This document shows, one piece after another, positions 1,544-25,750 of a stretch of 64,000 bases of DNA. Within the stretch, counting starts at the first letter, position 1; the number at the start of each line of letters is the position of its first letter. Made by a program: the position numbers and the translations under genes. The notes under the pieces are model-generated. The model did no database searches and was not told the origin of the DNA. It saw only the letters and a list, made by a program, of their open reading frames with translations. Source of the DNA: Podarcis pityusensis (taxonomy: Eukaryota); the NCBI GenBank assembly GCA_964106645.2, contig OZ067043.1. One strand, given 5' to 3'.

Positions 1544-3334
1544 GTAAAACAATAAAGTCTTCTCATTTCCTGACCCGACTCCACCCCAAATCTTTCTCTA
1601 CAGGAAGAAACTGTGGTATTTTGTACCTAGATTGTGGGGTTCACTTTTTCATCCAACTTCTGCTACGTTTAAAACATTGTGTGATATGAAGAAAGGTTTG
1701 AGATTTGGGTGAGAGAGTAGATTTCAATAGTTAGGATATTTGTCCTTGTTAACTGAAGAAGCAGAGCCTTTTGAACATGCTTTCTTGTGTCCCATGAGCA
1801 AAGGAGATTTCTTATCCATGACCCGGTAGCATATTGGATCAGAAATATATCACTCCAATTCCAATATAGGTTCCTGCTTTCAGGATAGTAAAACACATGT
1901 CACTAGTTGTTCCACTTAGACCAACAGTCGGACAAAAAACATTTTGATTCATGAATAGTTACTCAGTTGGGCCAAAGACAGAAGCTCTTAGCCAGTTTCC
2001 AAAATGTGGAAAATCTGGATTTCTAAAATGCACAGGACTTTCTTGAACAGAAATCTTCCCTGCTGCAGAAATTTTCCCCATTAAATGAGAAAATTATAAG
2101 AATGAAGGTTGGGAAATGATGGGAGGTAGCCTACTCACCCAGCTGCCTCCCTCATGAATTTATGTTAACCTAATGGCAACTCTGAAGAGGGCTGCTTAAA
2201 ACATTTCAGTGGCTTCATACGTTCTACAATTCTGCGTCTTTTGGTAACAGGGAAACTCTTCATATAGCCATGGTGCCAGAGCACAGTGTGGATAGGAAGT
2301 GAGGATAGTCCTTTTGAGGGAGAGAGAGAGATTGTGATTGGGATATCTGCCCCATTCTAATGAGCATACATGCCCATTAGCTGGCCTCTGATAACTACTT
2401 GTATGCAAAACTACTACCCCCTGCAAGCAATGTAACTCATGTGTGGTAGTGGTCGTGGCTCTTAAATTGATATATATCAGATTCTGCAGAAATGAGTTTA
2501 TAATTAGCTCCTTGCTGACACCTGTGAGACCTCAGTCTTGCAGTAGGCTCCTCCGCATATAGAGCAGTGAGCACTAATTACACTGATAAATTTACAGTTT
2601 ATATAATTTCACAGTGACCTTTAGCGTAATCTCAATATGTTTGTGCTGAAAGAAAATATCACCCTCGTTAATTTAACTTGAAAGGCACTAAGCAGGCAGC
2701 ATTAGGGAAGTGCATCCATGGATACTTGCTCTTCATACTTACTAAATCAGCATCCTCATCTAGGAGGATTGCAGATGAGCTGGGCAACCCTTAGGCACAT
2801 GCTGGGCTCTCAACAACATTCACATCATGTGCACTCGCCTGCTGCTGAGCAAGCTTCAGGGAGGAAAAACCTGAGTTTAAAAACAAAACGTGTTCAGCAC
2901 TACCGTCACGTCCAAAGTTTATTTTGTTTTTCTTCATTGTAAGCAGTGTCTCAACTGAATTTCACCAGGGATTCGGAGTCCCCAGTTGTAGAAGACACTT
3001 GAATTTCCGGGAGGAGGGTAGAAATCAATGAGTAGCATATCTGCAGGCCTGAGAGAAAATTGATTAAGCTGTATGGAAGTAAATGAGGTTTATAGACTTG
3101 CATATAGTGAGCTCAAAAAAGAGGTTTAAGGTCTTTATTGGTAGGAACATTGGAAGAGCTCACAAAGCAAAATTAGTATATGCTGCTGATCCAAATTGCC
3201 TCTACTCAATGAAGCTTCCTTTCCAGCAAGTGTGTAGAGGACTATTGTAACAAAGTATTTCATTTTCATAATCAAAAGAGGGAACTTTATAAGTCTGCAG
3301 TTCATAGGGTTCTGAAACTGCATAGAACAGATAA

Positions 3335-3558
3335 TGACCCAATTCACATGTAGCACTAAGCCAAACAGAAGCTTAGCATGGAGGAGTCAAACCTCAAACC
3401 TATGTACAGATGTAATGCTAAGCTAAATCGTGGTTAATGCCTGGGCCTTTAGCAGCACCAGGGGAGGAATGCTGCATTGCAGTCTTCATTCTGGGAACCT
3501 GCATGTTTGCTTTCTCATGCCAAGTTATGGTTTGGCTTTGCACGGCATGTGAACTGGG
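3335..3558. mobile_element. MITE-like element with terminal inverted repeats
   Basis: Left end cccaattcacatgtagcactaagccaaac is an imperfect reverse complement of right end gtttggctttgcacggcatgtgaactggg. Confidence 0.55.
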
Positions 3559-3764
3559 CCGTTCTATTGGTCAGCTGCTGAAGACTTGGGCCCTTCCAAA
3601 CACTCTCTATTTCTGTGTAATATTTTCCCAGTATTCAGACTGCAGTATATCTCTGAACAAATGCAGTTGTTTTCCCACCAGAATCTATAAGATGTACTGT
3701 GCCATGTCAAATGGGATTGTCTGAGTGTCATGACCACCAGTTGGATAGGCCCTGTGACACCACT

Positions 3765-5070
3765 GGTCTGAGAAGCTGAGGCAAATAGTGTTGAAAGGAG
3801 TTGGATTTCTAGGCCCTATTGAAGAATTAAAAAATGACAAGTCCCTGGGTCTGGGTGGCATCCACATGAGAGTTCTTAAATAATTCAAAATATCTAACTT
3901 CTCCCTAAGATTAGACTGCATATCTGAGAAATTGAAAGCGGCCAATGTAACACCAATTTTTAAACAGCGATTGGGGCGGGAGGAGGAATCCAGGAAGTTA
4001 CAAGCCCATTAGTTTGTTCTGGGAAAGCATTCTTAAAAAATAGAATTAGCAAGCATATTGAAGAGCAAGTATTGCTGAAGAAGAACCACCATAGCTTTTC
4101 CAAGAGTAAGTCCTGTCTCGGTGTCTCAATAACCTTTTAGCATGTAAATAGAGGTGATCCAGTAGACATTGTGTACTCCAGCTTTCAAAAAGCCTTTGAC
4201 AGAGTACCACACCAAAGACTCCCGAGTAAGCTCAGCAGGCATGGAATAAGAGCAAAGGTCTCTTATGGATCAGGAACTGTTTCAGAAACAGGGAACAGAA
4301 AGTTAGAATGGAGATCCCTTCCAATGGAGAAATGTTGGAAGTAGAATTTCTCAAGGATTGATGTTGGGGCCTTCTCCCTTTGACTTGCACAGAGTTAAGA
4401 AGGTGAGTTGTGAGGTGGCAAAGTTTGTTAATGATACCAAATCGTTCAGTGTGTTTAAAACAAAAAAAGGATTGTAAGGTGCTTCAGAAGGATCTCTCCA
4501 AATTGGGTGAGTGTGCATAAAATGGCAAATAGAATTCAATGTAAGGAAGTGTTAAGTGATGCACACTGAGGCAAAAAAAATCGTGAATTGGTGGTGACTC
4601 ACTAGAAATGAGATTTTGGGGTCACAGTGGATAACTTGATGAAGTTGTTGACCCAGTGAGCAGCAACTGTGAAAAGTGCAGATTCCATGCTAGGGATCAT
4701 TAGAAAAGGAATTTAAAATAAAACTGCTGATATCATAATGCTGTTATACAAATCTATGGTGCAACTGCATTTGGAATACTGTGTACGCTTGTGGTTGACT
4801 CTCCTCAAAAAGGATATTGTGGAGTTCAAAAAGGTTCAGAAAGGGAAAGCCAAAATGATCAAGAGGTTTCAGCAACTCCCCCATGAGAAGTTTACAATAC
4901 AAGTTGAGTGACACGGACATGGTAGAGGTATGTAAGATTATTCATAGTGTGGAGAAATTGGATAGGGAGACATTCTTCTCCCACTTTCATAATAATTTGG
5001 GCCCATCCAATGAAGCTAAATGTTGGAGGATTCAGGACAGACATATAAAAGAAAGTACTTCTTCACACAG
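3765..5070 (+). mobile_element. Degenerate 5'-truncated CR1 LINE (ORF2 reverse transcriptase remnant)
   Basis: Decayed motifs in order: KSPGPDGIH-like (~3838), ANVTPIF (~3941), KSCL (~4108), VDIVY..FQKAFDRVPHQRL (~4162), PQG-like (~4350), AKF[AD]DTK-like (~4418), W Q.. F N V.KC (~4523). Many stops and frameshifts. Confidence 0.9.
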
Positions 5071-5123
5071 GTATATAATCAGGTGAAATAAAATTAACAA
5101 ATTTATTATTAACTATGGGTATT

Positions 5124-5462
5124 TGCAGTTTAGTAGTGCTGCAGAGAGCTTGCTGGGGAGACCATGCATTAAAAAGGGACTCAAAAATAACTTAAACAAG
5201 GTTTTAATAACAAAAACAAAAACTCCTTATACACTAAATACATCAACAACAAACCAGACCCAACCACCAACCCATCCCTCAGGGTAATGAGGGAGCTAGG
5301 TGCTGCTCCTTATATACTATGCCCAAATGCTGACACAGCTTAATTAACACAACCTAGTAGCACCTGCTATGTTTCACAGCTGTAAGACTGGGTCTCGTTA
5401 TTTGCCTTGGCCCTGGCCCTTAAAGACATACACAACTTGTGAAGCAATAATGAACCTTCACA
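5124..5462 (-). mobile_element. Insertion splitting the CR1 copy; possible solo LTR
   Basis: On the minus strand it starts TGTGAAG, then TATATAAG (~5310-5317), then ATTAAA (~5203-5208). No convincing target-site duplication; left boundary uncertain. Confidence 0.35.
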
Positions 5463-5484
5463 TTTTAAAGTGACCATTCAACAA

Positions 5485-5738
5485 TTTACACCACCAAAAT
5501 GTAGTTGTAGTTACCACTGTGGGTGGCTTTAAAAAGAGGATTAGGAATAAATTTATCAGTGGATACTAGTGCCTTGATGTCTATGTACTATCTCTGCTGT
5601 CAGAGGCAGTATTGAGGTTACTGGGAATCATCAGTGGAAAGGGTGCTGTTGCTCTCAGGTCTTGCTTCTGAACTTCCAATAGGCATCTGTTTGGCCACTG
5701 TAGACAGTTTCTGAGCCAGCAGGGTTCTTCTAATGTAT
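5485..5738 (+). mobile_element. 3' end of the same CR1 element
   Basis: ggctttaaaaagaggattag...ggcatctgtttggccactgt...ccagcagggttcttctaatgt resembles the squamate CR1 3' tail. Confidence 0.7.
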
Positions 5739-7309
5739 GCCACTTACCCCTATAAGCATGCCTTAAAGCGACTCACAGCAAAACAGCAAAAACATATGAA
5801 TACGTCACTACACTAAATAGTCCAAAACCAATTCATTACAAAATATAACAAAATTTGAATAAACAATTCATTTCGATAAAACAAACTTTATAATGTTTAT
5901 ATAAAATAGACAATATAAGTCATTAAATCTTATCAGTTGATATTATTTATATTAAATAGGTAAGCCAAAGCCAGATATGAGAAAGCCTTCCAGTATAATC
6001 ATGCATTAACAAATAATATAACCAGTGCTATGTGCAATAAATGGCAAGCATATTTTATAGAACCTGCAGCAGATAATCTCTCACATGCCCCACTCTCATA
6101 TTCTGATTAATTTTCTTACTTATTAAAAAAGAAAACAAGTATTTAAAGGTTATAGTCATATTTCCTACATTTACTGTGGAAGAAAACTAATGCCAAGTCT
6201 AGACAGTGGCTTGCAGCTCCTCCTCGCTATTGATTGTACCGAGGCTGGACAGGGCAATTTGTGGGCTTTTCCTCCAGGTGCAACTAAAAGTGGCATCCCA
6301 AAATGAAGTAAATAGTAATAAATGTTTGATCATAAAAACTAAACTGTGCCTTTACATGATACAATCTAAGAGAGGCAGTTGACTTACTTGTGTAAGATTC
6401 AGGTTGTGACATTCAATCTGAGTTTGTTTAAAGATGAACAAGATTAAAAAGCAGTCAAAATGTGTTAGGTTTTTACCTCAAGTGTTTAGGACATTGCTTT
6501 CAAAATGGAACATAGCCATAGAATGATTATGTTAGAGGCCTAGTTTCCCACTTCATCACTTGCTCCCCAAGCAAAGGAAGACAGATCTGCAACATAGAGG
6601 TTTGGCAACACAGTTCCTCTAATGGTCCTGGCTGATGAGTGATGTAAAGATTTGCTGTTGTTAATTTTTTTTCTTTCTATCACACCCCTCCTGCACTTGC
6701 TGCTCAAGGTACTATTAAATAAAATAATGTTGTAAAATAAAGTAAGGGCATATTAAACATTGACTTATGTAGAGTGGAGGAAGGCGTGGCAGTGAAGATG
6801 TAGGCTAAGGAGAAGGTATTTACACTTTGCTGAAAAATTTGTGTAAAAATGAGAGGAAGCACACAAGCCAAAGCTGAAATGGGAGGCGAGATTGTATCAT
6901 TGGCAAGGTTATGGATTAAAAGATACTCCTACAGTACCAGATCAAGAAAGTGGCCAGCAAAGTTGCTCTTGCTGCTTGGGCCAGGCATTAATAGAAAATG
7001 TGGCTGGTCATAAATTAAAAGTAGTAATGAAATGGATGTAGTGTGGGCATAGTCATTCATCCATTTATGTGACTGCCATTCTGCCAAGGCAACCAAAATG
7101 GTTTATAATTTTGAAATACTGAAGCAACCAAAAACTACAACATTTTGAACAACAGAATTCTCAGTAAAGCCAACCCTGGGAATGTTACTAGGAGGCATTG
7201 TAGGATGGAAGGCATCCTACATTGGTGGGATCTGCATTACTTAACACCCAGAGCATCCAGTATAAGGAATAGCAGAAGTGTGGAAAGGATATAGAATTAG
7301 GGTGGCTTG

Positions 7310-7396
7310 GGCTGCAGTCCTAACTAACTTTCCTGGAAGAAAGCCCCATTGACTCTAGTCAGAATTACTTTTGAGTACACATGGTTAGGATTGAGC
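7310..7396. mobile_element. Short palindromic MITE-like repeat; related copies near 14310-14380, 20781-20865 and 50960-51012
   Basis: gctgcagtcctaac...ccccattga...ttacttttgagta...gttaggattg; similar core motifs recur at the other positions. Confidence 0.5.
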
Positions 7397-8530
7397 TTTT
7401 ACTCAAAGTAGCACTCACATACCAACATTCTTTTCAAATATTATTGGCTTAGTTACCTCATTGGGAAAGTCAGATCCTCAGGTCTGCTGTATCTGTAGTT
7501 CTGCATTCAAGGCTGTGCGAAGTGCCATATACCTCAAATTGGTTTGGATTTGGTTTAAATGGTCATTCAGACCTGAATGTTTCTAATGTAGATTATCAAC
7601 AATATGGACAAGCCTTTTGGTCACATTCAAAGCTCCTTTGTGCTAGAAAGTGAGCAAATGAAGATGTCATTCCTTAACTATAATTTCCTATTTTCATCCA
7701 AACCAGGAAATTTTGGTTAACATCTTCAGAACAAACCAAGATATTAAACAGTTTTTCAAAGTTTAATTAACTGGTAACCATTGTTTCCTAGTTCAGATGA
7801 AATGGGAAACTATCGTTAATGAAAGACATGGTGGTTTGTTTTGCTTGAAGTGAGGAATGAAAGGACTGTATGCACAGCCAAATTCCTGCTCTTGTCTCTG
7901 TTTACTAAGGGTGCTTCCAGACAGAAGTTTATTGTGGAATTGCTGCTGAACCATGCAATTTTTTCTTGCTGTGTCCGCATGAAGTTGTTGTCACCAAAAT
8001 GCCAAGCAATTTTTTTTTTTTACATTTAATTTCCATACCCCTTACTGCGAAAAATAGATAAGTAAAAATAACTTGTTATAAGCCTTAAGTCACTTTGGAT
8101 GTGGAAGCTAGTTAATGCATTAGCATTTTTTTGTGTGGTGATGGTGGCAGTTTGTCACATGTGGTGACATTTCTGTGGGTGGCCCCTAATGTGACAGTCT
8201 GTACACAGGTACAGAAATACTGCATACATGCACAGAGCAGAAGGCAATGGAGGGTGGTGGTGGAGTGTTGGACAGGAGGGACAATAAAACCATCTTCATA
8301 TATACTCTGTTGAGGTCCACTAATGTGGATAGCAACTGGCAGAATAGCAATGATATCCATGACTGGAAAAGAGGTGGGGAACAGAAATATGTGGAAGCTA
8401 ACATGCCAAATGTGCACACTGAAGTATCTGATCTGAGCATTATGTTTGCAATATAAGCCCCCCTCCTGGAAGCACCCTAAGGCAGCACAATAATAAGTGT
8501 CATTAATTATTTAGGTTGGGTGGATGTCTT

Positions 8531-8680
8531 ATAAGAACACTGGAAGCTGCATGCAGAGTCAGTCCATTGGTGCATCTAGCTGAATATAGTCTACAATGAC
8601 TAGCAGTTGGTCTCCAGGTTTCAAGCAGGAGTCTGGAGATGCCAAGAATTGGATAAACTGGCAGCTTCTGCATTCTTGTT
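8531..8680 (-). mobile_element. Old SINE-like fragment with a CR1-type tail
   Basis: taagaacac...ccattggtgcatctagct...ctccaggtttcaagcagg...ggagatgcca resembles the reverse complement of squamate short retroelements. Confidence 0.4.
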
Positions 8681-9875
8681 CATGTTGAAAACGTACTCCA
8701 TTAGAATTAAAACTTAGGATGTTGTCCAAATTTTTATTTTGTAGCATATGACTTACATCTTCATTTGGTGATCCTGACCACTATCATGGGAGTTCTGAAT
8801 AATTTTTATTTTATGTCTTTTATTGCCATATTCTCTAACATATATTAGTGCATACTAAACCTCCAAAGAGATCTTGTTTCATTGCTTCAGAGTCACTATA
8901 CAGCTCTGGCAAGGGCTATCTTACACTAAGATCTGGAGACTGGGTTTTAATAACATACCAGCTAAACTTTAGGGAATCCATTTTGAGTGTGTGTTGGGAT
9001 TCCTTAGCTTTGCATCCATACAGAATTTTCAGTGACTAGGTGGATACAGAACAGCTCCATATGATCTGTTTGGCATCAACATAAAACAGAAGCTGCTTCA
9101 GTTAGCCAGGAATCATTTCTGGACTCTGTTGTAAGAGATGCTTCTTGTCTCTTAGAGTGGGGGAAGGGGATGTAGACACTTTATTTACAGTGATAATTTG
9201 GAGATGGTGCAGGGGCAAGTAAGCACTCAGCAAATTTTTCTTTGGAGCATGAACCAATAACCCTCTTCTTCCTGTCAGTACAGCTTGTGAGCCATGCAAG
9301 CTTCCGTGATGAGAATGGTTCTGTCAAGGGGGATGGAATGGTAGTTAGAAAAGCAGATAAATAGGCAGCAGATTTATTATGGTAGAGATTACCCGCAACT
9401 TCAGCAAACGGCATTAGCCTTCCTGATGCTTCACTCATCTGTGGACAAAAGCATCAGCAAGTATAAACCAGCCATAAAGCGAAAATGGAGTAATGTCATC
9501 TCGGCTGTGGAGAATGCTAAACGAAGCAGCTGGAACTGCTTCCTCTGATTAAAAGCTAGGGCTACTGCCTGAAGGAACATGCACTAGGAGAGTGGGAGGG
9601 AAAGAGATAACAAGTGTAAATATTTTAATTACTCTTTAAGAGGCAAGTTAAACATGCTTAAAATCTGCCTTCTTTGTATTTACAGAAATCTTTGAGTGTC
9701 TTTCTTTGTTTCCCATTGGGTGATCAGTGCTGTGGATAATGGAATGTGGGGAGCGGTTAATCTCAGATACACAGCACTCATATGCTTACTGGTATTTATT
9801 GATCAATACACGGAACATGATTTGACGCTCTGTGTCCTGTTTAACCCTCTCTTTCTATCTGTTTAAACTCCCCAG

Positions 9876-9884
9876 TTTTCTTTG
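9876..9884 (+). CDS. PTPRF: Candidate 9-nt microexon (meA3-like), TTTTCTTTG, adds VFF
   Basis: ctccccag|TTTTCTTTG|gtaagt; frame-preserving in phase 1; no AG in 9775-9873; located between the Ig2 exon and meA6, where PTPRD/PTPRS have a 3-aa mini-exon. Confidence 0.65.
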
Positions 9885-10957
9885 GTAAGTGCTTGGTGTT
9901 CAGATATGCAAAATCTGCATCAAACCAACACATACCATGAACTGCCTACAAATTAGATCTGCATGAATCTCCCTCACCTTACTAACAGCCTTCATTTGCA
10001 CAAAATAAGACCAAGGGGACAAAACTGGGGATCAGAGGAGTTTGCTGTCAGTTTACATACACGGGTTTCCCTCTGCACATCTGGACCAATGCTAACAACA
10101 AAGCCCATGACTGAGCAAACTGCACTTTTGCTTGAAGTTTTGGAGCAGTTAGCTTTGTAACCAAGCCCTCCTTATAAGATGCACTCATAGCATGTGAACT
10201 TATTTTCTGCTCCCTTATAAGGAGGGTTGGAAACCCTTTCCTCTGCCTACTGTATAAATTATGCAGAGCGAGTCTGGTGCTCCATTGGTCCAAATAAAAA
10301 CTAGAAGAAAGTGCTTTAGATTTTTATTTGAAAAATCTGTTGTGTAGAATACCAATTTCTGGCCAGGGGGAACCTGGTGTAGGTTTTATTAAAGTTACCC
10401 CTGAATTCATCACTCAGTTTTTAAGTTTCAATTACATAATCAGATTTTGTCCCCAACGGTCCATGTAATCTTAAACCAAGAATGTGTGTCTCACCAACAC
10501 CATATGCTTAATTTTTCTCCCCCCACACACTCTCTCACAACACTCACTCTGGTACTCCCACAGCCCCATCTTCTGGCAGAATAAAAGGGCGCAGCACCCA
10601 TATCCCAGTGGCTTCTCCATCTCAGTTGTGACAATGAATGCTAGTGGTTTTGCTTAGGAGTCAGAGCCCTCCTTTGTGTAGGACCAGCAATATATTAATT
10701 GGGTAAAATGGGGCCAGACTCTGTGTTCTTGGTAGCAGAGCGCTTTACTAACCACCTGAGGGCATCACTCTGACTTGTTACTGCACATCCTTTATTTCTT
10801 TTTATTTATTTATTTATTTATTTTTGTTTGTTCCTGTTGTGCTAATACAGATTCTAGCTTTGAAAAACTTTCTACTTTTTTAGTTATAATTTTCTTCCTT
10901 TCCTGTTTGTACTAACGCTTCTCTCTAATCTTATTTGCATTCAAATTACCTCACCAG

Positions 10958-10975
10958 GTGGTACACCAATCAGAG
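10958..10975 (+). CDS. PTPRF: Mini-exon A6, 18 nt, adds GGTPIR
   Basis: tcaccag|GTGGTACACCAATCAGAG|gtaaga; peptide matches meA6 (PTPRD GGTPIR, LAR GGSPIR); TACTAAC at 10910-10916 and TGC at 10936-10938. Confidence 0.95.
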
Positions 10976-11524
10976 GTAAGAATGCTGAACTGTGCCTCTA
11001 ATTGTCATGTCACTCCATATCCTTTCTGCCATGTCCGTCTCCAACAGTATATCATCTCCAGCTATTCTTTCACTCCAAACTCTTGTCAACTCACTTGCGC
11101 ATCTGCCGTTCCTTCCTGTGTGTGCTTGTTTTTGTTTATTTTTAGTGTGGCGCCTTGTAGAATCATCCATCGCAGGTGTGCACAGGTCAAAGGGGGTTAT
11201 TCAACGGGAGGTTTTCAGAGAGAGAACGCTATCCCCATTCATGCCACAGAGGGCTCTGAGGTCTTGAATCTTTCAGATTCAGTCACCCTCTGGGGCACCA
11301 CGTCCTGGCAGGTCTGAAATAGCTGCTGTGGTGTGTTTTGAAGGACGTAACACTTTCACAAGAGAACAGTGAAGCCCTTCCTTCTGCATTATTGCTGACA
11401 GGAATTGAACTAATACAAAGGAAATAAATTCTTAAAATGCCAGGCAAATCTAACTTGAGGAATAAGACTGGAGGACTTTCTTTGAGAGCTGAAGGTGCAC
11501 CTTTTCATAAATTTAATAAATAAA

Positions 11525-11569
<45 letters not shown>
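11525..11569. repeat. (ATT)n microsatellite, about 15 units
   Basis: Read directly. Confidence 0.95.
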
Positions 11570-14500
11570 TTGCTGGCCCTTCTCTGGTATGAAGGTGAAG
11601 GGAGGAGATCTAAGATGCCAGCTCCACCCCTTCTGAAGCCTGACAAGGATTCATGGTGCACTGTAGCATAAAGATTTGTTGTGAGTAAATGAATCAGACA
11701 CACATCTGGCTGCATTAAGTCTTCAATTGTTCAATCCACCTCCAGTCTGACAGCTCTGCATTCCCAGACCTTGCTAGTTTCACTGCCTATATGTGCTAGT
11801 AACATTTCTAGCCTACACACTCAAAGTAGTCCCTTGAATTAATTTTAAGGTTGTAATCAGTACTATATAGTGTGACTCTGATCTCTTGTGATTTCAGTTA
11901 CTGCTGTTGACTGACCCCTGAATTTCCTGATAAACTTTTTAGCACCACTAAATTACACTATCTCATTTGTCCAATGCTCCCCTTCTTTCCTCCCCCTTCT
12001 CTCTCCACTGAATCACTGCTGGAAGTTAATAATCCAAGTCTTTGGAACTGGTTCTGTTGCTGGGGGTTAATGTTTTCAGTTCTTGTTAAGTGATTTTGGA
12101 GCAAATGGGGGTTGCTGTTTCAAGTGCATTTGCATCAAGTTGCTTCTGTGAAAAATCTGGGTCAGGGGAAAAACTGTAAACCTCATTTTGATATGAATGG
12201 GTTTCTCTGTCATCTTCTCTCTGGAATGCTGCAAGATTGACAGCTGTGATGCCACGCATTTTTAAAACCTTTTCTCTGCTTCTATCACAACTCTGAAAGC
12301 AAAATGACAGACTGAATGCTAAGTAACCAAGCAGGCCCTATCTTTGCCCATATCAGGTTGGGCCTTTCCCAGCACACAACTGCTATGTATTTCCTCTGTA
12401 TCAACAAGCGAGGGCATTAATGACTCAGCACCAGAACCGCCTGGATGTTCCGTACATCCTTTTTGAGGAAAGTGGACATATCTTTATAATGAGAATCATC
12501 CATCTCATAAAACATAAATCTCCCTATCTGAGTCCTAATGAGGTATTTTAAGAATGTGTCTGACATTATTTAAAATGTATGTGTCCCGTTTGAATGTCAA
12601 AGATGACATTTCTGTACGTGCCAAAAAGCCACCTCTTAGCATCTCATACAGGATTTGTGTCAGACTTACACCTTTTGTTAAACACACAGGCTATTGAGTC
12701 TCTAAAGATTACCAGATGTGGTAGGTGAAGGCACTTTTGTGAAAGGGAGGTTATATTCACATAGTGGTCTGTACTGTGGTTCTCACTAAGGTAAGTTTGT
12801 TGCACTTCTGGGATCAATTTGATGTGGAAATAAAACTAAATTTTTTTTTGTTTGCACAGCTAGTTGGATGTAAAGTTTTCAGTGGTTCATGTTGAGAGGT
12901 GGATTCTATGTGAATGCATTGAAGGGCCAATCATACTTTCTGCCTATTGAATGGAAGTGTTATGGAAGTCAGGCTGGAGAAGCAGGATAAAATTTTATTT
13001 CTGAAACTAACCTTTCCTTTGGGCCCTGCAGCCGCAGTTCTACTCTTGCTGTCCAGAGGTGCTGTCATTTTTCTAACTGAGAGCTCTGTGTTCACAAGGC
13101 ATGTTGTCACTTTTAACATTCCCCCTTTGCCTTTCAGGTGAGACCCAGGCTGAAAGGTCAGGGTGAGTTTTGATAGACTGTTCAGAGATGCATGGGTCTA
13201 GTTGGTGACTGGCAGGTTAGACAAGAGGATGGATGAATGGATGTGTATTTTGAAGGATGGCTAGTAAGCAAAAATAAAAGCTGCTTTAGGGGAAGTGACT
13301 TGACACATGTCCCCTTCCTCAAAGTTCAAATCAAGTTTTCTATGTTGTTATAGAATGCACTTAAATATTATGAGAAATATTTCTCCTGGAAGCAGAAAAT
13401 GCTGGCATGTCATGGACCTCTGATGCTTCAGATTTTGCCATTGCAGGTACATGAGAAGCAGTGGAAGTGTTAAAGGGAAGACAGCATTTTAAATGGTCCT
13501 TTTCTTCACAAAATAAATTGGAATCAATTGGAAAGCGTTCGTACCCATTGACTGGATAGACTTTCCTCCAGTGTGAGTTTCACCACTGCAAAGCAGAAGG
13601 ACAATTACTTTGAAACAGAAAGATCTGATAATTGGCAGAGAAGAGCTGAGAAACTTTTTATCTAATACTTTTACTATTGCCCAAATTTCACGCTGTTTTG
13701 CCCTTAGCACCCTCTTTGGCAGCCTTGTAGTGCTGCTTCTCTTGGGATCTGCATATCTCAATCTCTCTTTTTCTGTATCTGGAGTACAAGAGGAAAGTGC
13801 ATGAATGCCAGATGCATGATACACAAAAGGAAGGGGAATCAGTGATTGAGCTGTATTCCTGCATTTGCCCTTGTGTGCTGCTCAGTTTCATAGCTCTCCG
13901 TCAGTGACTGCCTCACTTGTATATATCACAGAAACCCAGCTTCATTCCAGGTCCCAGCCATGCCAATCATCATGCTCAGGAAGAAGAGGCACAGCTGAAC
14001 AGGAACATAATGAGCATCAGTAATAACATCACTGTGGTAGTTTTGTTTTTATTTATTTAGCTTATTTGGCCATAAAAAATAAATAAATTTGAGATGGGGG
14101 CATTTGGCTGCCATTCCAGGTAGCACCTAGGATTATTAGAGCTGAAAATCTAAGTGGCATGTTAAGTATTGATATATAAATCATGATCCAGAAAATTTTG
14201 TGCACCATTTTACTCTACTGGCAACTGCAGAGCTGCAAGAACCCAGTGTGAGATTGTGAAAGTAGGCTTCTGCCTTCCTCGTCAAATCCTCAAAAAGGTT
14301 TCACTCTTGTGGACTTATATGAACATAAATTTAACTGAACTCAGGTGAAGCTTCTGAGTAAACATTCATAGGATTGCTCTGTTAATGAGACAGTCAACAT
14401 TTTTCATTAACTTTGCTGGCAAAGAAAGGCAGCTCCTGCCAAAACCAGAACACTTCTATGTTCCATAGATTAGACCTACCTGCAGAAATGTAAGGTGAGA

Positions 14501-14929
14501 AGGTATCTGTGGATTTATTTATTTTAGCCATCTCTGACCATGCTTATGAAGCCCACCAACCCCCACTACCTATTTTCACTTGCAATTACAAGTCAGTAGA
14601 GAGTAGCCTTCCCCAATTCCCCTCAGCCCCAGATGGCATAGCCAATGGTGAGGAATGATGAGAATTCTAGAACAAAACATTTTGGGGTTGGGGAAGGCGA
14701 TATAAAGCATATGCATGTGCCTCACAAGTAGAGAGGAGCAATGTAGGGAAACGCACATACATAATGTTTGGAAATATCCAGGGTCAAGGAACAGAAGGCT
14801 AGGAGTTTGAATTCCCTTTCTTGGGGGTTCCCTCTGCCTCCTGTCAGCCATGATGCAGGTCATCATTGCTTGCTGCTACTATATTTTAATACTTGCTTTT
14901 GTTATATTTGAAGGTAGTGATGGACTGGA

Positions 14930-15690
14930 TGTGGGCCAACAAATTAAAAATGAATCCTGAAAATCCAGGAGCTGGGAGGGCAGCCTCTTCTGAGCAGGGT
15001 TGCAATCCCCTGGAAGAAGCAGGTTCATAGCTTGAGGGTGTTGTCCAGCACTGTCACTTTAGGTAGCTAATTTCCTGCTATCGCTGGTTTGCCAGCTACA
15101 ACCCCTTATGGAGAGAGGTGACTTCGCCGCAGTGCTGCATGCTCTGGTAACTTCCAGATTGGACTACTCTACATGAAGATGACTTGGAAACTTCAACTGG
15201 TTCAAAATTCAATGGTCAGATCGCTGGCTGGGTTTGCCTTTAGCACTTATGCAACTCATGTTCTAAAACAGCTACATTTTCTTCCAATTCAAGGTGCTCA
15301 TGCTAGTTTTTAAAGCTCTAAATTATTTAAGCCCCAAATATCTGAGACACTGCTGCCTTCTCTACAGACCCTCTCAGATATTAAGATCAGCAGAGGGACC
15401 CTTTGGGTGGCTCTGCTGCCCTCAGAAATTCAAGGTGATGGCTCAGGAGAGGACATTCTTTGCAGCAGCTTATAAATAGTGGCACCTTTGCTATATAGGC
15501 TTTGTCAGTTGCTGAAGACGCACCTTTTTATCCTGGTGTTTTTGGTGTTTTCAGATGTGTGTTTTCAGGACCCACCTGTTTTTAATAACTGTTTTTAATA
15601 CTGAATTTAAATCATAGTAACCAGCCCTGGCACCTGCTGATGAAGGGTGGGTAATAAATTTAACAACAGCAGCAACGTAGCAGCAGTAGT
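14930..15690 (+). mobile_element. Degenerate L2-like LINE 3' fragment
   Basis: catgctctggtaacttccagattggactac (HALVTSRLDY), ggaaacttcaactggttcaaaat (KLQLVQN), caattcaaggtgctcatgctagtttttaaagctcta (QFKVLMLVFKAL), ending gaagggtgggtaataaat plus a simple-repeat tail. Confidence 0.75.
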
Positions 15691-17137
15691 ATTGGTAGTA
15701 GTAGATGAAGTTTTCCTGGTCTGGGTTACAAAACATTAAAAACAAACCTGATAATGCTGGTGCTGCTGTATTAAAGAACAGCCAACTTATTAGTATTATA
15801 TGTGAAAGCACCTTAAGAGTGGCAGAAGGAAGGCTTTTCTGGCTGGCGTCCCCTGCACTGCCCCCTGCCAGCCCCAGCGTGACAATAGGAAGGGCTCCCT
15901 ACATCATTTTTATTACATAGCAAAGCTCAGTGAGGTTCATTTTTTCTCTCCCTGACATATAGACTTAGGCTACAGTCTCAATTTATCCTTCTAAATAATG
16001 TAGGTGGCGGCAGTTGATTCACATTAGTTTTCCTTCTGTTGCAATGATATGAAAACTGAATTTGACCTCCGTTCCTTGAAGTGGGAAGAGCGGAGACAGC
16101 AATTTTGGCTTCTGTTCACAGTGCTGTTTTCTCTGGCAAATGGAAATGGGTTCAGACTCTGACAAGCAGACAGGTTAATGCTTTTTCTCTTGGTTCAAGT
16201 GTGTATGTGTTTCTGAGCAAATGCCCTCTTCTGCCATCTCTGGAATCTCAACTTCTGGAAGAACCAAGAAAGTCTTTGCTGCTCAGGAAGTATGGAGGTT
16301 CTGATCTGGCAAAGTGGCATCAAGGCTACTTCTACATTCACCCTTTGCTTATTTTCCTCTTCACCATTGTCATCCTTACTTCCTCCACAAGCTAGATGCA
16401 GCCCATTTTAAATGATTTCCAGAGGAAGCAACTGGACAGGGTTCAGCACTCATGTATGATGGACGAGATAAGGAACAAGAATGCCATTCAAGCCGTATTT
16501 GTCCCTAATGTGGGTTGGGCTGATTTCAGGTTTAAATTGGATTTAACACAAGTTGTACCATTTTCTGATGCTGACTTATTAATTGTATTGATGATTGTAT
16601 TGAGGTCTTTATCATAAATGAAAGGAGTAGTCTTCAGAAGCAGAGATGCAAAGGACTTCTCAGGGTACAATTTGTAATCCTTTTGGTTTGTAGGTTTCTA
16701 AGATTCTGTTATTCATACTTTATGGGGAAGTGAAAGTTTAATTTTAGAGAATCGAATTGATAATTAAAGGAAGGAGAGTAGTGCACCAAGATGCAAATTG
16801 GTTGTGTGAAGATGGTATTTGTTGTGATATTTCAACGGATAAACCTGAATTCTTTTGAAACTTTCTGTGCTTGGTAGAAATGGATGTGTTCCATAAGAAG
16901 TGAATTGAAAAGGTGTCAGTAACTGTTTGCCTGTGCAGCTATAAAAACTGGACACAGCAGGTGCTTTTACGCAACAACCAAGTGGAAGTGGTGTTTGGTG
17001 GACCCTCTGAGAAGTGCCATGCCACACATTTACCAGAAGCCCTTTGTGTCCTAAGTTAGGGACACAGAGCAAAAATTTACATGTTTTGTAAATATATTAT
17101 TATAACCAATATTGTCTGTGTTCTATTTTCCACATAG

Positions 17138-17248
17138 GAGCTCTACAGATTGAGAACAGTGAAGAGTCAGACCAAGGCAAATATGAATGTGTCGCCACGA
17201 ACAGTGCTGGGACCCGTTACTCTGCTCCAGCCAACCTTTATGTGCGAG
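17138..17248 (+). CDS. PTPRF: PTPRF exon, Ig2 second part, 111 nt: (G)[36 protein letters not shown]
   Basis: Acceptor ttttccacatag|GA, donor CGAG|gtaaag; D-x-G-x-Y-x-C Ig motif; not in the ORF track. Confidence 0.97.
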
Positions 17249-18577
17249 GTAAAGTTGGAGAAGGCAAACTTCCATCCCTTTCTACCTTCTCTTCCGTGTC
17301 TACACCTTCTCTAATAACCCATGAGACATTGCAGTGAGAGGTTACCTTTATGATGTATTGTAAATGATGAAACCTAAATGCCCAACCAGTCATTGAGTTC
17401 AAGCCTTGGAAAGTCAATTTTTGCCACAATTTTTTTCTTTATTTCATTTTTTTCACCAGAGCTTCTTTAATGGTCAAACTGGTTAAACCACTGTCATAAA
17501 GAGGGCAGAAATTCATGTTTAATTATTTGCATATTTTGTTAAACAAAAGTGTGTTTGGGGGCTTTGTGAAATTAGTGGGTCTCTCTTTTTCTCACCACCA
17601 CCCTTTTTGGGGAGGGTTTATTTATTTATTTTAATGAGATAAAGCTTTGAGCATTCATTTCATAAGCTTGACTTGTTCTCTTGCAGGTGCGTTGGTGCAT
17701 CATGTTGACTCTGGAATAGTATGTTAGTTTCCATAAGCTCTCTTGGTCAACACCTTGTCAGCAACGGGGATTATTGCAGAAGCTATTACAATAGCTTCCA
17801 TTCCTGCTGAGAATCAGCTTCAGTTTGTTGCATGAAGCCACTTTGCCAGACTGTTTTCTTAACTTGTTATTATTCCCAGATCTCAAAGTCTTTTCACTCA
17901 CTACGTTAAATTTGATACAGAATTTTGTGTTTGGAGAGCAAAGAGTTTGGTACTTCATTAAAAGCTGATGAGTTTTCTGTTCTGTTTTACATGGGGACAA
18001 TGTGTGTTCTCCGTGGCCAGACCTTGTATTAGCCAGGGGTATTAATGTAAGACACCCCTTGGAGGTGTGGTTTGGTACTTACATAACAGTGGGAAAGAGG
18101 AAGAGTGTCAATTTGGTGCCTTTGACTGGTTGGCAGTTAAACTCATATTTTATTCCTTCTTAGGTCCTGGATCTCAATAACTACCCGTTTAGAAATACTG
18201 TTTCCATCTTCATTCCTTCCTCTGTCTTTTCTCTTTTTTCTCTCTCTCTGTCTCCCCACTTGATCGTTGCTTCCTAATACTCATGCACACGCCTTTTATT
18301 TGTGGGGTGGAGGGGAGCTGCCTTAACCAAGCTGAGGAAGAGTTATTCCCAGGAGAAGCCAAAATGACTTACTGTGTGATTGCTTCTAGGTCTCTTGGTT
18401 ACTCTCATTGGGTTCAGCACTCATTTTCTACAGGTGCCGTTTCATCTTGCAGAACAATTTCAACATACAAATCTGTACGATGCTGAAGTTTCAGATAGTC
18501 TCAGAACTCTTTATCTGTGCAGCAGAAATGCCCATTTCTCAAGCATAATGTGCTTATTATTGACCTTATATACCCTG

Positions 18578-18580
<3 letters not shown>

Positions 18581-18608
<28 letters not shown>
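18581..18608. repeat. (TG)14 microsatellite
   Basis: Read directly. Confidence 0.95.
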
Positions 18609-18611
<3 letters not shown>

Positions 18612-21420
18612 TCAGCTCTAGTAAAAATAATGTCATATCTCCCCAGAGTAAAGGGAGGGTGTTTGTTTGAACATATTTCATGTTTACATTGTTGTGTAAA
18701 TTTTTGGACATTCTTAATCACTTTCACATTTTTCCCCCAAGTATCTTTCTCTGTGTCAAGCCTTTCCGAAAAAGCTTGGGAAGGCTAATGTTTCACCTGA
18801 ATACACATCTTGCAAAGGCAAAGAAACCTCACCTTTAAACCTGCCTGATTCCCTGTTTGTTGAGACTTTCTTTATTTAGCTAGAGAACTCCCCGTAGATT
18901 CTACGGAGTGCAGTAAACTGTGACCCCAGGTTTGATGCGAACAGCAGGTTGTTCAGCTAGCTGGCTGGCTGGCTGGCTCTCTCTGGAGATAAGGTGACAC
19001 AAGCCAAGCTTCTAGTAAGGTTCTGTTTCTAGCCCTGTGTGTGTGGCTCATTTTCTATTAACTGTTGTATTTCTCAGGCATAAATTTCGAAACAAGCCTC
19101 TTTTTATTGCGTATAATCTTTACAAGGTTGGACTCCAAGCTGCAGGATTGAGATAAAGCCCCATAGTATATAAAAGACAGGTTACTACATAAATTGTCCC
19201 CTGTGGAGGTTTGCCATATGTACTGTTTCTCGGACTATATTTGTGCAGGCGGCTTCGTTTTATAGAACAAAATAGACACCCTAACCAGCCCAGTGAAAGA
19301 CTTTCACCATTCCTTTGGCTCCCAATCCATTGCCAAAGCAGGAGGCTACTTCCCTTGTTTGAGAAAACAGAACAGAATGTATGCACAAATATTATCCACA
19401 TGTTATATTACTGAAACCATACAAGTTTCATGTCACTAGAGGCAAGGAATACTGTAGCCATGATGACCCCTTCTTGCTTGCAAAGCGTCCTAAGGTAGGG
19501 TTGGTTTGCATCAGGGGATGGAGTATTCAATTTTCCCACTGCTGTTCCTGTGTGGGTGTGCATATGCACGCACGCACACACACAGCTGCTTTTATCCCAA
19601 CCAAGGTTCTGGATTCCTGGTAACCTTGAAATCACAGGTCTGGACCCTCACAAATGAAAAGATGAGGGTTGCAGTTTCAGGGGAAAGTGGCTGGTAAAGG
19701 AAGGTTAAGAATCACTTTTACTCCTTCCCCTTTACTCCTCCTCCTCCCTCCTTGCACTGCATCCCTTTGCAACAGCACTTTGCAAGGGAGGAGGAGGAAC
19801 CATTCAGGGGTTGTTACCCATAGCTGCAACATAACATGTAGCTTGTCCCTTACCCTTGTTCAGATGTGCATCCAAAGAGTTAGAAGCATCCTACAGTGTG
19901 TGGTCTGGTCTCTGTGTAGCTCTGAGAAGAGTAAATGGCAAGCCACAATAATCTGTGTAGCTGGCGCCTCCAATCCCATATAGTTTTCTGTTTGTATAAT
20001 ATAACCTGCATGTATAAGAACCGAACACTTTTCCTTAGTGCTCATATCATTTTCATAACTCCTCTCAATAATCCTTACACTCTGTAAAATAGACCACTAT
20101 CAGTATCCACATACTGCAAATTAGGAGGTGAAACTGAGAGAGACCTGCTTGTTGGGAGCAAATCATAGCTGAGCTCTTTGAACTGGGTACTTCCTCTTTC
20201 TTAGACCACACCTTTAACCACTTCCCTACATCAACTAATCTTGTGTACATGGGAGGAAAACAGTCAGTGGGAAAAGGAGATAATTCTTTCCATGAGTAAA
20301 ATATAGCATGCAGGGGATGGTCTGAGTAGCTGTACATAGGCTGAATGTGGCTTGTGGATCTCAGATGGTTGGATTAGCTCTTGCGGCATCCTACCAAAAT
20401 GTTTTTTTCTCTCTCCTAGCAACCTTATAAGTTGAAATGGTTGTCACTTGGCCTCTTCTGCATTTTCCATCAGTTTTTCCCCAACCAGCTTCAGTGGATA
20501 CAAACTCCAGGGTGGATAATTTGGTTTAGTTATATTCCTCCTGCACATAAAAAAGTTTGCTCTCTGAGCCACATATCCTTCCATCGCTTAAGAGTTCTTG
20601 AGTGCTGTAAAACCAAAATAAATTGAGCATCAGCTAAGAGTTACCCATCACTGTGTCATCCAGATTAGGTCAGCCCAGTTAGTAATGCCATTCTGAAGAA
20701 TTTTTTTTAATGAACAATAAAATTGCTAATTGAATCAACTATTAAAGTAAAATGTTGACCCACAAAACCAGAGATTGGTTAGGCTGCAATCCTGTACCCA
20801 CTTATTTACATGGAAGCAAGACCCACTGAATTCAGTGGGAGTTGCTTCTGAGTAAATAGATGGAACTGTTACTACCTTTCTGTACGAAAAGCTGATCACA
20901 TTGCAACTTTTTAAAAAATGTTAATCTCATAAGCCTTATACAGAAAGGTGCTATGATTTTAAAAACACCAACTTTACACTGTGATAAGGCATGTCTTGCC
21001 CTTTTTCTGGAAAAAGAGGTTAGAAGTGTAACTGGATAATAATAGTAATAAGAATAAGAATAAGGCTACAATTCTATGCACAACTAGCTGGTAAGAATTG
21101 GCATGTAAATATTTTAAATAGGAGTTCTTAAAAATAAATATTAAGCAAGCACACCAGTTTCTTTGTCACTGACTTCTCCAGTATGATGAAATGCATTGTA
21201 TTGTTAGTTAAATTATAACAGCTGTTTCTAAATGGGCATCTATACCTACAAATTGGCATATACAATTTTTAGGCAAACCAGTGCCCTCTTTTGTCCTCTT
21301 TTGGGTTGATGGATTTTCTTGTTTGGGGTGGGGGTTATTGTGCAAGTAATCACCCTAACTGTTACCACATTGGTTCTTCTGCAGAGGATAGGAGAATGTG
21401 CTATGAGGCTTATACATAAA

Positions 21421-21497
21421 TTATCAAAGTGATCAGGGTTACTGGGAGCTTCTCTGACCTTATCAAAGTAATCAGGGTTAGTAGGAGTTTCTCAACC
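21421..21497. repeat. Two-copy ~39-bp tandem duplication
   Basis: ttatcaaagtgatcagggttactgggagcttctctgacc followed by ttatcaaagtaatcagggttagtaggagtttctcaacc. Confidence 0.85.
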
Positions 21498-24290
21498 TCT
21501 TCATTTACTTTCTTTTTCTCTGTGGAATACTGGGAACAGCATTGTGCCTTCTGATTGCTTGTCCAATATCACATTTGTTATTTTGATGCTGTTGCTCCTC
21601 ATCAAGTGAGACTAGCAGTTGCTGTCAGACTACTGACAGATGGGGCCCATGAAACATGGAACACTTAAGGCCTTTCTTGGCTCCTGTAGGTGATAGCAGA
21701 ACTTGAGGTTGTGGTGTCAGTTATATTTTGCATATATTGCTCTTTCCATGGAAGATGTAAACTACTGCACTTCTTACTGTCATGCCTTTAAGTCCCAGTG
21801 TTCTGAAAAGAGCAGGAGGACTTGCTTCCTGCTGTGCCAGAGATAAGGGATGAAGAGAAGGGCTCTGGTGAGAAAGTGAGCATTCCAATTCACTAGGTGT
21901 TGGCATATTTACTGATAAAGCAGGCACAATTTCAACATGAGATGAGGTGTAGCTGCTTCCATCCAGGGTCTTTCCAGAGCAGACTCAGCTGCAGATGTTC
22001 ATTTCCTATAATCCATTAGTATAAGAAGTGATTAAGAGATAATCCAGCAATTAGTAACAAATTACAGGCCCCAAGATCATTCTTGACTGACGGGCTAGAA
22101 AGTTATCTGTTTGTATTAGTGTGCTTCATAAGTGAACCTTGCTTACTGTAATCTAAAGTACAAACACATGTGGGCAACCATTACAGCTTGCCTGGCCTGG
22201 GCTTTGTACTGATGAGTTGTATAGCATTGCTGTGCACCTCAGATAGCACAGTCTTCTTTTCATATTGCCTACCTCAGTGTTAGTTCCTTTTTTGTGGAAT
22301 GCTGGTAATTTTGCAAAGTAGTTGCCTCTATGCAACTACTTTTCACTGGGGTAGTAAAACTGTATCTGGGCTGATACATTTCAGACCGCTAGTGGGGTTC
22401 ACATGATTCAGTGCTCTCTTTCCTGTAAAAAATCACTTCCACATAGAAAACTAAATGTCAAAGGAAAAGATTCTAGCCTAGCCTTCTCTCAGAGAATACT
22501 AATTTACTAACGTACAGGAATTATTATTAATATTTTGGCTCCATATTGGCGAATCTTTATGTAATCCTCCTATCTGTACTCTGAAGCAGTACAGCCCCAG
22601 ACACAGGTCTGCTCACCTCACTGAGAAATGTAGGTCTGCACTGGGGAACTGAGTCAAAATTCAGACCCACCCAAATTGCTGAAGTCCCAAAGATTTGAAC
22701 CTTTTTTAATAGGAAGGTTATATAGTTGGGATTCTAATCTCTTCATACAACAGATTAGGTTCAAATAATAGAATCTTATGAACAATCATTTGACTACATA
22801 TCCAAAGGCGGAACCTTTGCCATCTTCCCATCATCCCCTGAAACAACTGTGGAACTACAAATGTGGTACAATCCTCCTGTCACACTCAGAAAAGACAAAG
22901 TACTTTTTCCATTCACTCCTGGGTGGTGACAAAGGAGTATGCAGAACTAAAACTATATTTCCACTTTCTGTACTTAATGGCTACTGCAACACACTTCATT
23001 CTGGTCCTTGAGCAAGTGAGCACATACTCTTCGATTCTATGCAAAGAGAGGAGTACAGTGCTTCCTTTCCCCTTCCTCCCCCACATCTATTGTGTATCAG
23101 TGCTGAGAATATGCACTGTGGAGTAGTATCTTAGCTTCCATGGTACTTCTTGGTGCAGTCTGTTTAAGGAGCAGGTAGGTGGCTGCACATCATGAAAACT
23201 AGCTGAAATCCCATCCTCTCTCATCCTTGCAAATGAATTACTGATGGAACCAACCATACAGTGTATATCTTTCCCATTAAGGGTTTTAATTGAGAGTGTG
23301 TTCTGCTGACAGGCAGTGTCCTCCCCCCACACCCGCCGTGCCTTTTCCCACCCTTAAAATGTGACTCATAAGCAGTTTCTAACCACCAGAACAGTCTCTG
23401 CATTCTCTCAGCAAGGGTTCAATTTCAGGCGATTCACCACAGATATTAGCTGCTATAAGGTCATTCCTGCAAAGGAAACGAGGTTTTCCATGCCCTTCAG
23501 GGAAACACAACTAACCTCTTACTATCTCTCCTGCAGGAACAAAAACAGGAATGTACTGCATTGCCCTGCTGATTTGGGGTGATCGTTGCTTTGACTTCTT
23601 GCCCTCCTTTCTTTCCCAGTTCAGTGCATCAGGGGTCCTGACACAGCAACTGGTTCATACTGCACTAACGTTTCTCTGCTGCTTTTAGCTCTGTTTGGAA
23701 AGAGGGAGAAAGAGGCTCTTCATGCTTAAAGAATCCCCATTGTTCACCAGGACTGCTTCCTCTGTGTTGAGGAGTGATGGGGCGTGTGTGCAGATACTGA
23801 GCTGTGTGAGAGAGGCAGGTGGGGGTTAAAGTGCCTCCGCTACTGTCTGTACAGTTGGGACGGAGCTTGGCACTTGACTGAAAATCCTGTGGTGTCTGAA
23901 ATGTGGTGGGTATGTCCATGAGTGTGTGCACACTTGTTCTTGCCTGTACTTGGCCAGAAGTGGGGGCAGCCTACCAAAATCAACTTGGCTCTTGGTGTTC
24001 CTGGGACATGTGCTCCTATATACTGATGGTCTGGTTGTGTGCATCTGGACGAGGAAGAGAAGCTGAATCCAGTGTTCTGTGGCAGGAATGTTTGTTTGTG
24101 TGTGTGCGTGCACAGTTGCACAGTGGGTAGTCCTGGCCGGTCTCTACCATCATGTCTTGTTGTTTCAGTGCTGTGCAGACACATGCAGCTTGGCCTGTTT
24201 TTACTCTCTGTGTTTTTCCTTGTCTTTTTTTATTCCCTTCTCATCTTCATCGCACAATGTCATCAAACAAAACAAACTTTCATCTCTCAG

Positions 24291-24302
24291 ATCCGCGAGA
24301 AG
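24291..24302 (+). CDS. PTPRF: Mini-exon B, 12 nt, adds DPRE to the Ig2-Ig3 linker
   Basis: catctctcag|ATCCGCGAGAAG|gttggt; frame-preserving; resembles meB peptides ELRE (PTPRD/PTPRS) and DQRE (LAR); no AG in 24189-24288. Confidence 0.92.
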
Positions 24303-25539
24303 GTTGGTCCTTTTCACTTCTTATCCATCTACAGTATGCCACCTCTGATGAGACTTTTCCAGTAGGGGATGGAGAGCCAGCCCTGCAAGGGGAGGGTCTG
24401 ATGGCCCCTGGCTCTCTGCCAGGCACTGCCATAGCAGGCCTGAATCTGCTTCCTAATTGCTATGTCCTTGCTGACAGCATTGACCACACTGCTTGCATGC
24501 CTTTTGTCGCTTGATGTTTAAAATGCACAGACCCTTATCTGCATGCAGTCCATCCCAAAGATTTTCGTGTTTTGAGATGGGAATGGGGTGCATGTACATA
24601 GAGAGTAGGCAGCAGAGTGGGTTTTGCCTTAATCTGTTACTTTGTTAGACTCCTGTGTGACCTTTCCTTTTTGTTGAGGAATGCAAAGTACTGATTTGAA
24701 GTTTTGGTCAGGGTGGACACCGCTCGCTCACAGTGTAAGCTGCTTGCTATAGAGTAGGAAGAGGAAGGAGCAACTGATAGAGGCACCATAACTGCCTTTT
24801 TAACACATTGAATTCATTCCACATCACACTTGCGTTTGAGATGCTGTGTTTATGATACATGCAAAGCACCACTGATGTAATTGAAAAAGCAGAGTTTTTT
24901 CATGCTGGATCATTTTTGTTTATAAGATTGATACCTGTATACCTGAAACCCAGGAACTTCATTCTTCCCTGGACAAGGACTCACTCAGCAAGGGCAACAA
25001 CTGTACTAGAGAAAGGAAGGTGTGCCGTTATCTTACCTGCCTTTCTCTTATTGACAGTGCTGTGTTGCACCAAGATATTAGACAAAAGGTGATTGGTAGA
25101 CATCAAAATTAGCAGGTGGCTTAAGCTACTCCAATATTTCCATTGAAGTTCAACTTCTGTTCTAAGTCAGGTATTTTCAAAATGGTGCTGAGTATTGAAA
25201 TTAAGGGAGGATGTTGCCTGGACTTAGCAGTGCCATAACCTGAAGCAATTCCCATTGATATATCAACAACTTTCTCTGACCCAAGGTAGTATTCCTTTGA
25301 TGAAAGAAACAGAATCCATAACTTTATAGGCCCTAAAATGAACAATTAATAGAGAATGGTGGATATTGAGAGTTAGGAAATGTCTATGCATTAGTTCTGA
25401 AGGGGGATAATGTTCATCCTTCAGTCCACATGCTATTGCATCCCTTATGTTCCCACACTTTTTCCTGTGTACCTGTAATGATCATAGGACAGTGACTACC
25501 CTATTCTGCATGCCAGGACTTATGGTTGGAGTCTGTACT

Positions 25540-25540
<1 letters not shown>

Positions 25541-25574
<34 letters not shown>

Positions 25575-25750
25575 TTTTATTTATACCCTGCCCTCCCCAG
25601 CCAAGGCTGGGCTCAGGGCGGCTAACAAGCAATAATAAAAACAAGTTGAATGAATACAACTTAAAAACAAAATTAAAATACAACATTAAAATATTAAATA
25701 TTAAAATGTAGCCTCATTGCAGGAGGAGAAAGGAAAAGAAAAAAGAAAGA
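25541..25750 (-). mobile_element. Retroelement 3' end with (TAA)11 tail
   Basis: (TAA)n at 25541-25573 followed by tttatttataccctgccctccccagccaaggctgggctcagggcggctaaca, typical of a reversed LINE 3' terminus. Confidence 0.6.

Follow-up and report, generated by a model that had tools for sequence, protein, structure and literature searches.

The meA and meB inserts determine the postsynaptic partners of the LAR-family receptor phosphatases. The meA peptide is GGSPIR in LAR, ETFESTPIR in PTPsigma and ESIGGTPIR in PTPdelta, and E181 of PTPdelta, the first residue of its 3-residue insert, contacts IL1RAPL1 in the complex (PMC6078854). The meA of PTPRD is encoded by two microexons that give rise to meA3, meA6 and meA9 (PMC8711739, PMC7821500), and targeted RNA-seq in mouse divided meA of Ptprd and Ptprs into meA1 and meA2 and treated meA of Ptprf as a single microexon (PMC10883964). 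These reports agree with two statements from which the original prediction for the locus analyzed here had started, namely, that PTPRD (ESI) and PTPRS (ETF) each have a 3-aa meA part, and that mammalian LAR has the 6-aa meA alone (PMC6078854, PMC10883964). Of the three family members, LAR has received the least study and has been described with a single meA exon; solved Ig1-2 and Ig1-3 structures exist for LAR, PTPdelta and PTPsigma. Here we describe a candidate 9-nt microexon that lies upstream of the known meA exon in the PTPRF gene of the lizard Podarcis pityusensis.

The window is a 64,000-nt stretch of contig OZ067043.1 (assembly GCA_964106645.2), and its plus strand, on which all features discussed below are located, carries the 5' part of the PTPRF (LAR) gene. 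Two Ig2 exons, A (1355-1543) and B (17138-17248), are separated by a 15.6-kb intron (1544-17137) that splits this domain, and Ig3 and FN3 exons, mapped against the bird PTPRF protein, follow further downstream. Exon A was delineated by translation (62 protein letters), RNA reads and a tblastn comparison with bird PTPRF; its 3' end encodes GRIKQLRS plus one extra G (phase 1), and the boundary at 1543 is matched exactly by the reads of RNA run X22 and by the spliced contig of X11. Exon B was defined by its translation, (G) plus 36 protein letters, and by X22 junction reads. The known meA6/meA2 microexon, GTGGTACACCAATCAGAG (GGTPIR), with the donor gtaaga, occupies positions 10958-10975, shifted upstream by one base from the coordinates originally implied for it (10959-10976). 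This exon is the orthologue of the mammalian LAR meA (GGSPIR), with the same gene and the same insertion site. Simple pattern scans of positions 17249-32736, the interval from exon B to the Ig3 exon (32737-33021), detected no meB-like 12-nt exon of the DQRE/ELRE type; the sole 12-nt candidate there is at 28649-28660 and has a poor donor. A second 9-nt arrangement, AG/TCTATTTCT/GTGAGT, was found at 31412-31420, about 1.3 kb ahead of the Ig3 exon, with 67 AG-free nt upstream.

The candidate microexon, TTTTCTTTG, is located at 9876-9884 and would add Val-Phe-Phe after QLRS. A sequence scan recovered every feature that had been listed for it, that is, the cag/TTTTCTTTG/gtaagt arrangement, 99 AG-free nt, TTTAAC, a pyrimidine tract, TGCATG and TACTAAC. 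The acceptor cAG (9873-9875) follows an AG-exclusion zone of 99 nt (9775-9873), with the preceding AG at 9773-9774. Inside this zone, the 19-nt run CTGTGTCCTGTTTAACCCT (9830-9848), invariant in a six-genome alignment, contains TTTAAC (9840-9845), a putative branch point. Next to this run is the pyrimidine tract, which, together with the acceptor, spans positions 9849-9875; pyrimidines account for 75% of the 20 nt preceding the acceptor AG, and the CU-rich, PTB-like words CUCUCU and UCUU suggest that the tract could be bound by PTB. The donor is the consensus GTAAGTG (9885-9891; GTAAGT at 9885-9890). Downstream of the exon, the Rbfox-type motif TGCATG (9960-9965), a possible binding site for proteins of this type, is embedded in the invariant TCTGCATGAATCTC, and the invariant TACTAACAGCCTTCAT (9980-9995) includes TACTAAC (9980-9986), a perfect branch-point consensus. 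A perfect TACTAAC at 10912-10918, about 40 nt ahead of the GGTPIR acceptor, mirrors the invariant copy at 9980-9986.

Compared with the Irimia-type neural microexon program, the candidate shows a length of 9 nt, a multiple of three, and strongly conserved intronic flanks, and it has a conserved TGCATG within the range of about 100-200 nt 3' of the exon that is typical of Rbfox-type regulation. Many SRRM4-dependent microexons also have a UGC-containing enhancer near the 3' splice site. No TGC is present in the 45 nt preceding the acceptor of the candidate, unlike the GGTPIR exon, which has TTTGCATTC, a UGC-type element, upstream. Recursive splicing was considered as another role for the site and rejected, given that exon A, once joined to the 9 nt, regenerates no 5' splice site.

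The candidate and the GGTPIR exon are each in phase 1-1, so that all four combinations (neither insert, VFF, GGTPIR, and VFF with GGTPIR) are in frame. Hand translation confirmed that the frame is preserved in each case, as had been claimed for VFF ahead of GGTPIR, with no stop codon throughout, and gave the predicted junction peptides S-VFF-G(ALQ) and S-VFF-GGTPIR-G(ALQ). The measured distance to the GGTPIR exon, 1073 nt, is the approximately 1.07 kb estimated before.

Thus, the candidate resembles the PTPRD exon meA3/meA1 (ESI) in being a 9-nt, phase 1 exon in the Ig2 intron, after QLRS and before an 18-nt GGTPIR exon; in PTPRD, meA1 and meA2 combine into inserts of 0, 3, 6 and 9 residues (PMC8711739, PMC7821500, PMC10883964). 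Unlike the PTPRD exon, the candidate, known here from its sequence, would encode the hydrophobic, uncharged VFF. By analogy with the PTPdelta complex, valine at the position of E181 would not make the contact with IL1RAPL1, and VFF might, at most by extension, affect the binding of IL1RAPL1 and IL1RAcP. The similarity to PTPRS meA1, the ETF part of ETFESTPIR, includes position, length and a phenylalanine as the third residue, the first two residues being Glu-Thr in PTPRS and Val-Phe in the PTPRF candidate (PMC6078854, PMC10883964). Accordingly, VFF does not conform to an ESI/ETF-type peptide: it starts with Val rather than Glu and has only the hydrophobic third residue in common with both. In contrast to mammalian LAR, for which the 6-residue insert is the only one described, the candidate would be a second, upstream exon beside that insert (PMC6078854, PMC10883964).

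Loci for comparison were collected as gene models and read-through ORFs from protein searches with exon A and then as the contigs that harbor them. They include the skink Lerista edwardsae (L001, GCA_029204185.1), a lizard-like assembly (L005, GCA_020142125.1), the passerine Pitangus sulphuratus (L006, GCA_029286575.1) and three Logan assemblies (L002, L003 and L004), which read as birds because they are near-identical to Pitangus in this region. Invariant runs were determined in an alignment of six genomes, and the exon and its spacing were compared across seven loci from six assemblies. Alignments to Lerista, L005 and Pitangus delineate a conserved core around the candidate (9700-10060), with identities of 96.4%, 95.8% and 84.7%, respectively, the last measured over 360 nt. 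For comparison, exon A is 91% identical to Lerista and 81.6% to Pitangus, exon B is 81.0% identical to Pitangus, and the alignable intron outside the core is 80-84% identical to Lerista; for intron and exons of the window overall, the range is 80-92%. The core of about 360 nt surpasses every other block of the 16-kb interval in conservation, including the flanking coding exons (about 81% between lizard and bird), and weaker lizard-bird conservation, at 75% identity, reaches upstream to about 9318. The GGTPIR exon served as the positive control for the conservation signature; the block around it is 87.3% identical to Lerista and 80.1% to Pitangus, that is, conserved less than the candidate. No RNA family in Rfam accounts for the conserved block. 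Lizard and bird also share other conserved intronic blocks, with identities of 73-80%, at 15882-16230, 24117-24547 and 26827-27462, the first of these being 93% identical to Lerista.

Two 19-nt runs are tied for the longest invariant stretch in the six genomes, CTGTGTCCTGTTTAACCCT and CAGTTTTCTTTGGTAAGTG (9873-9891), the latter consisting of CAG, TTTTCTTTG and GTAAGTG; the next in length are TACTAACAGCCTTCAT, ACCAACACATACCATG and TCTGCATGAATCTC. Across the seven loci from six assemblies, TTTTCTTTG is unchanged in every one, the AG-free zone spans 99-109 nt and is kept or longer in birds despite changes in its sequence, the pyrimidine tract contains 75% pyrimidines, and TGCATG is found at exactly +75 nt from the exon. 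The gap between the candidate and the GGTPIR exon varies from 1058 to 1164 nt in all seven loci, and the distance to exon A from 5.6 to 8.3 kb. Lizards and birds diverged about 280 million years ago. On the evidence of these alignments, the AG-free zone and the TGCATG spacing would be strand-specific constraints acting at the RNA level since that split. Because the 9-nt element is unchanged from lizards to birds, a genuine alternative exon, as yet undescribed, is very probable, and the strong conservation of the element between the two groups points to a function; because the 9 nt are invariant everywhere, they carry no synonymous-versus-replacement signal of coding. The AG/9 nt/GTAAGT arrangement, sought in orthologous introns at the suggestion of the original prediction, is thus conserved in lizards and in the passerine. 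The description of the element as one of reptile PTPRF holds insofar as it is present in lizards, but it is not confined to reptiles, as birds carry the identical exon.

The origin of the element appears less straightforward than the retention of meA3 that had been proposed. In ptprf of the catfish Tachysurus (L008), both the core and the 9-nt exon are absent between exon A and the GGSPIR exon, and at least 63 amphibian PTPRF isoforms, including several X1 forms, have inserts of 0 or 6 residues only, with no 3-residue insert among those listed. Retention is therefore not established, and the 9-nt element may be either an ancestral feature or an amniote or sauropsid innovation. In the catfish, only about 430 nt of intron (L008 6549-6983) separate exon A from the GGSPIR exon, and these are mostly of low complexity, with A-runs and a long CT repeat. 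The meA exons were not found in a cobra PTPRS contig that stops 9.4 kb past exon A and contains 2105 N.

According to both RNAalifold and single-sequence folding, the two splice sites of the candidate would lie in a hairpin (9873-9944). In the predicted fold, positions 9939-9944 form the partner of the acceptor AG, and positions 9924-9937 that of the donor region (9883-9897); the paired stretches are CAGUUU with GAACUG, and UGGUA.GUG.UUGGU, which includes the donor, with ACCAACAC.UACCA. Folded independently, the lizard and bird sequences have energies of -21.3 kcal/mol (z -2.5) and -20.4 kcal/mol (z -3.4), respectively. The arms of the hairpin are invariant, and nowhere in the core is conservation lower than at the hairpin's apex (9898-9917). 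No compensatory change was detected in any hairpin pair, so that the hairpin stays a prediction; if it is real, both splice sites would be hidden in the stem, and inclusion of the exon would require factors able to open the stem. Masking of a 5' splice site by a stem is known from MAPT exon 10 and from TSL2 of SMN2 exon 7. As in these cases, the predicted stem pairs the donor of an alternative exon, here along with the acceptor AG, but unlike them, the PTPRF stem is a predicted one, with no compensatory changes.

The gene is covered by only one (X22) of the three raw RNA runs from this species. All 88 X22 reads over the exon A donor continue into exon B, skipping both TTTTCTTTG and the GGTPIR exon, and the X11 spliced contig likewise joins exon A straight to exon B. 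The junction reads expected for the candidate in RNA of the species were thus not seen (0/88 with TTTTCTTTG), but the same count was obtained for the GGTPIR control exon (0/88); because this known exon is equally missing and leaves the comparison with no positive control, skipping in X22 is not a valid negative.

At the protein level, the listed PTPRF isoforms (about 120 from tetrapods, 63 from amphibians and 118 from birds) include none with a 3- or 9-residue insert: the insert is either missing or one of GGTPIR, GGTPIK, GGTSIR and GGSPIR. The matches listed favored exact matches to insert-less queries and did not comprise the long sauropsid isoforms, and because of this bias against inserts, they do not establish that VFF is absent from sauropsid annotation. 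Among the 118 bird isoforms, and in many from frogs, GGTPIR itself does occur, so its exon is certainly used in both groups. Two gene models, P0058 (Lerista edwardsae) and P0060 (GCA_020142125.1), were rejected as RNA proof of GGTPIR inclusion, being predictions on genome assemblies. In both models, the GGTPIR exon is spliced to cryptic exons further downstream, of which one matches the window after ttttag at about 11146 and the other frameshifts exon B; these joins are probably ab initio artefacts. The strings VFFGGTPIR, VFFGGSPIR and VFFGALQ were not found in the searched literature, the lone match to SVFFGG being unrelated.

Taken together, these observations suggest that the element is probably a regulated, alternatively spliced 9-nt coding microexon and the PTPRF counterpart of meA3/meA1. 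As an exon-like, meA3-like element of PTPRF, it stands up in position, length, phase, order and conservation; its inclusion in mRNA is a prediction, X22 having skipped both meA exons. On this reading, such an exon would be shared by sauropsids at the least and would enter mRNA in a limited set of cells. Its inclusion would extend the Ig2 loop by Val-Phe-Phe, placed after QLRS either alone or ahead of GGTPIR, and sauropsid LAR would then have four meA states rather than two. Inclusion would probably be limited to certain cell types, most likely neurons. An exon of 9 nt is far below the length required for ordinary exon definition; the AG-free zone of about 100 nt with the CU-rich tract would fit PTB-type repression, the conserved predicted stem would mask both splice sites, and TGCATG at the fixed distance of +75 nt would fit Rbfox-type activation. 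More tentatively, and with somewhat greater doubt than assurance, we suggest that sauropsid LAR has a third functional meA state, absent from the textbook code of mammals, in which a neuron-regulated 9-nt exon would add the uncharged, aromatic VFF to the ligand-binding loop of Ig2, gated by a conserved RNA stem burying both of its splice sites.

The alternative that survives best, albeit an unlikely one, is that the element is a conserved intronic module of splicing control, a decoy or pseudo-exon that never or hardly ever enters mature mRNA. It would recruit U2AF and U1, and the hairpin and TGCATG would tune the use of the GGTPIR exon or the removal of the 15.6-kb intron. The extent of the conservation, at least about 360 nt and, at 75% identity to the bird, as far as 9318, that is, well beyond the 9 nt, is compatible with such a module, as are the constrained spacing to the GGTPIR exon (1058-1164 nt), the pairing of both acceptor and donor in the predicted hairpin, and the fact that inclusion was seen neither in RNA nor among the listed proteins. 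However, long conserved flanks are typical of known microexons too, such as the GGTPIR exon here, and the RNA and protein negatives are uninformative in view of the missing GGTPIR control and the biased listings. Furthermore, a decoy has no need to keep the frame, to be free of stops, to be 9 nt long, or to occupy the site of a coding 9-nt exon in the sister genes.

Considerably less probable than a decoy is a non-coding element conserved for other reasons, for example, an enhancer of PTPRF or of a neighboring gene, in which the splice-like words would be fortuitous. Blocks of 300-700 nt with about 80% lizard-bird identity are also present at 24117-24547 and 26827-27462, and the existence of such blocks elsewhere in PTPRF introns implies that conservation by itself is no proof of an exon. 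What distinguishes the candidate is where the conservation is concentrated: the strictest invariance coincides precisely with acceptor, 9-nt exon and donor, the AG-free zone of about 100 nt has been kept or lengthened in birds even as its sequence changed, and TGCATG is on the sense strand at a fixed distance, strand-specific RNA features that would be superfluous to an enhancer. The rarity of the full motif by chance argues against this reading as well.

To quantify that rarity, the intron 1544-17137 was scanned for comparable sites. It contains eight GTRAGT hexamers and eight AG-(3k nt)-GTRAGT arrangements, and a pyrimidine tract accompanies only one of the latter eight, the candidate. Of the 4585 AG dinucleotides counted over the window, just 13 (0.28%) are preceded by at least 100 AG-free nt. 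The intron was also simulated 1500 times with a first-order Markov model. A loose class of motifs, defined by an in-frame exon of 3-27 nt, a GTRAGT donor, a pyrimidine content of 70% or more and an AG-free stretch of 60 nt or more, arose in 0.6% of the simulated introns, and a strict class, with the AG-free stretch raised to 95 nt or more, arose in none (0/1500). These criteria were chosen post hoc, when the site was already known, and for this reason, conservation weighs more than the simulation. That the motif is a functionless, splice-like arrangement produced by chance is hardly credible: both strands of the window do contain a few looser AG...GTRAG arrangements at other sites, but the simulation result and the invariance across lizards and a bird contradict this explanation, and the conservation of the sequence already effectively refutes it.

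If the regulated microexon is genuine, LAR would gain, from a second meA exon shared by lizards and birds, isoforms whose loop differs strongly in chemistry (VFF compared with ESI or ETF). Such an exon would provide a natural test of the role of the first three insert residues in partner choice, and the fixed layout of hairpin and TGCATG would offer a compact model for the recognition of a 9-nt exon. A true VFF exon would also mean that the splice code of LAR either varies among the lineages of amniotes or has so far been described incompletely.
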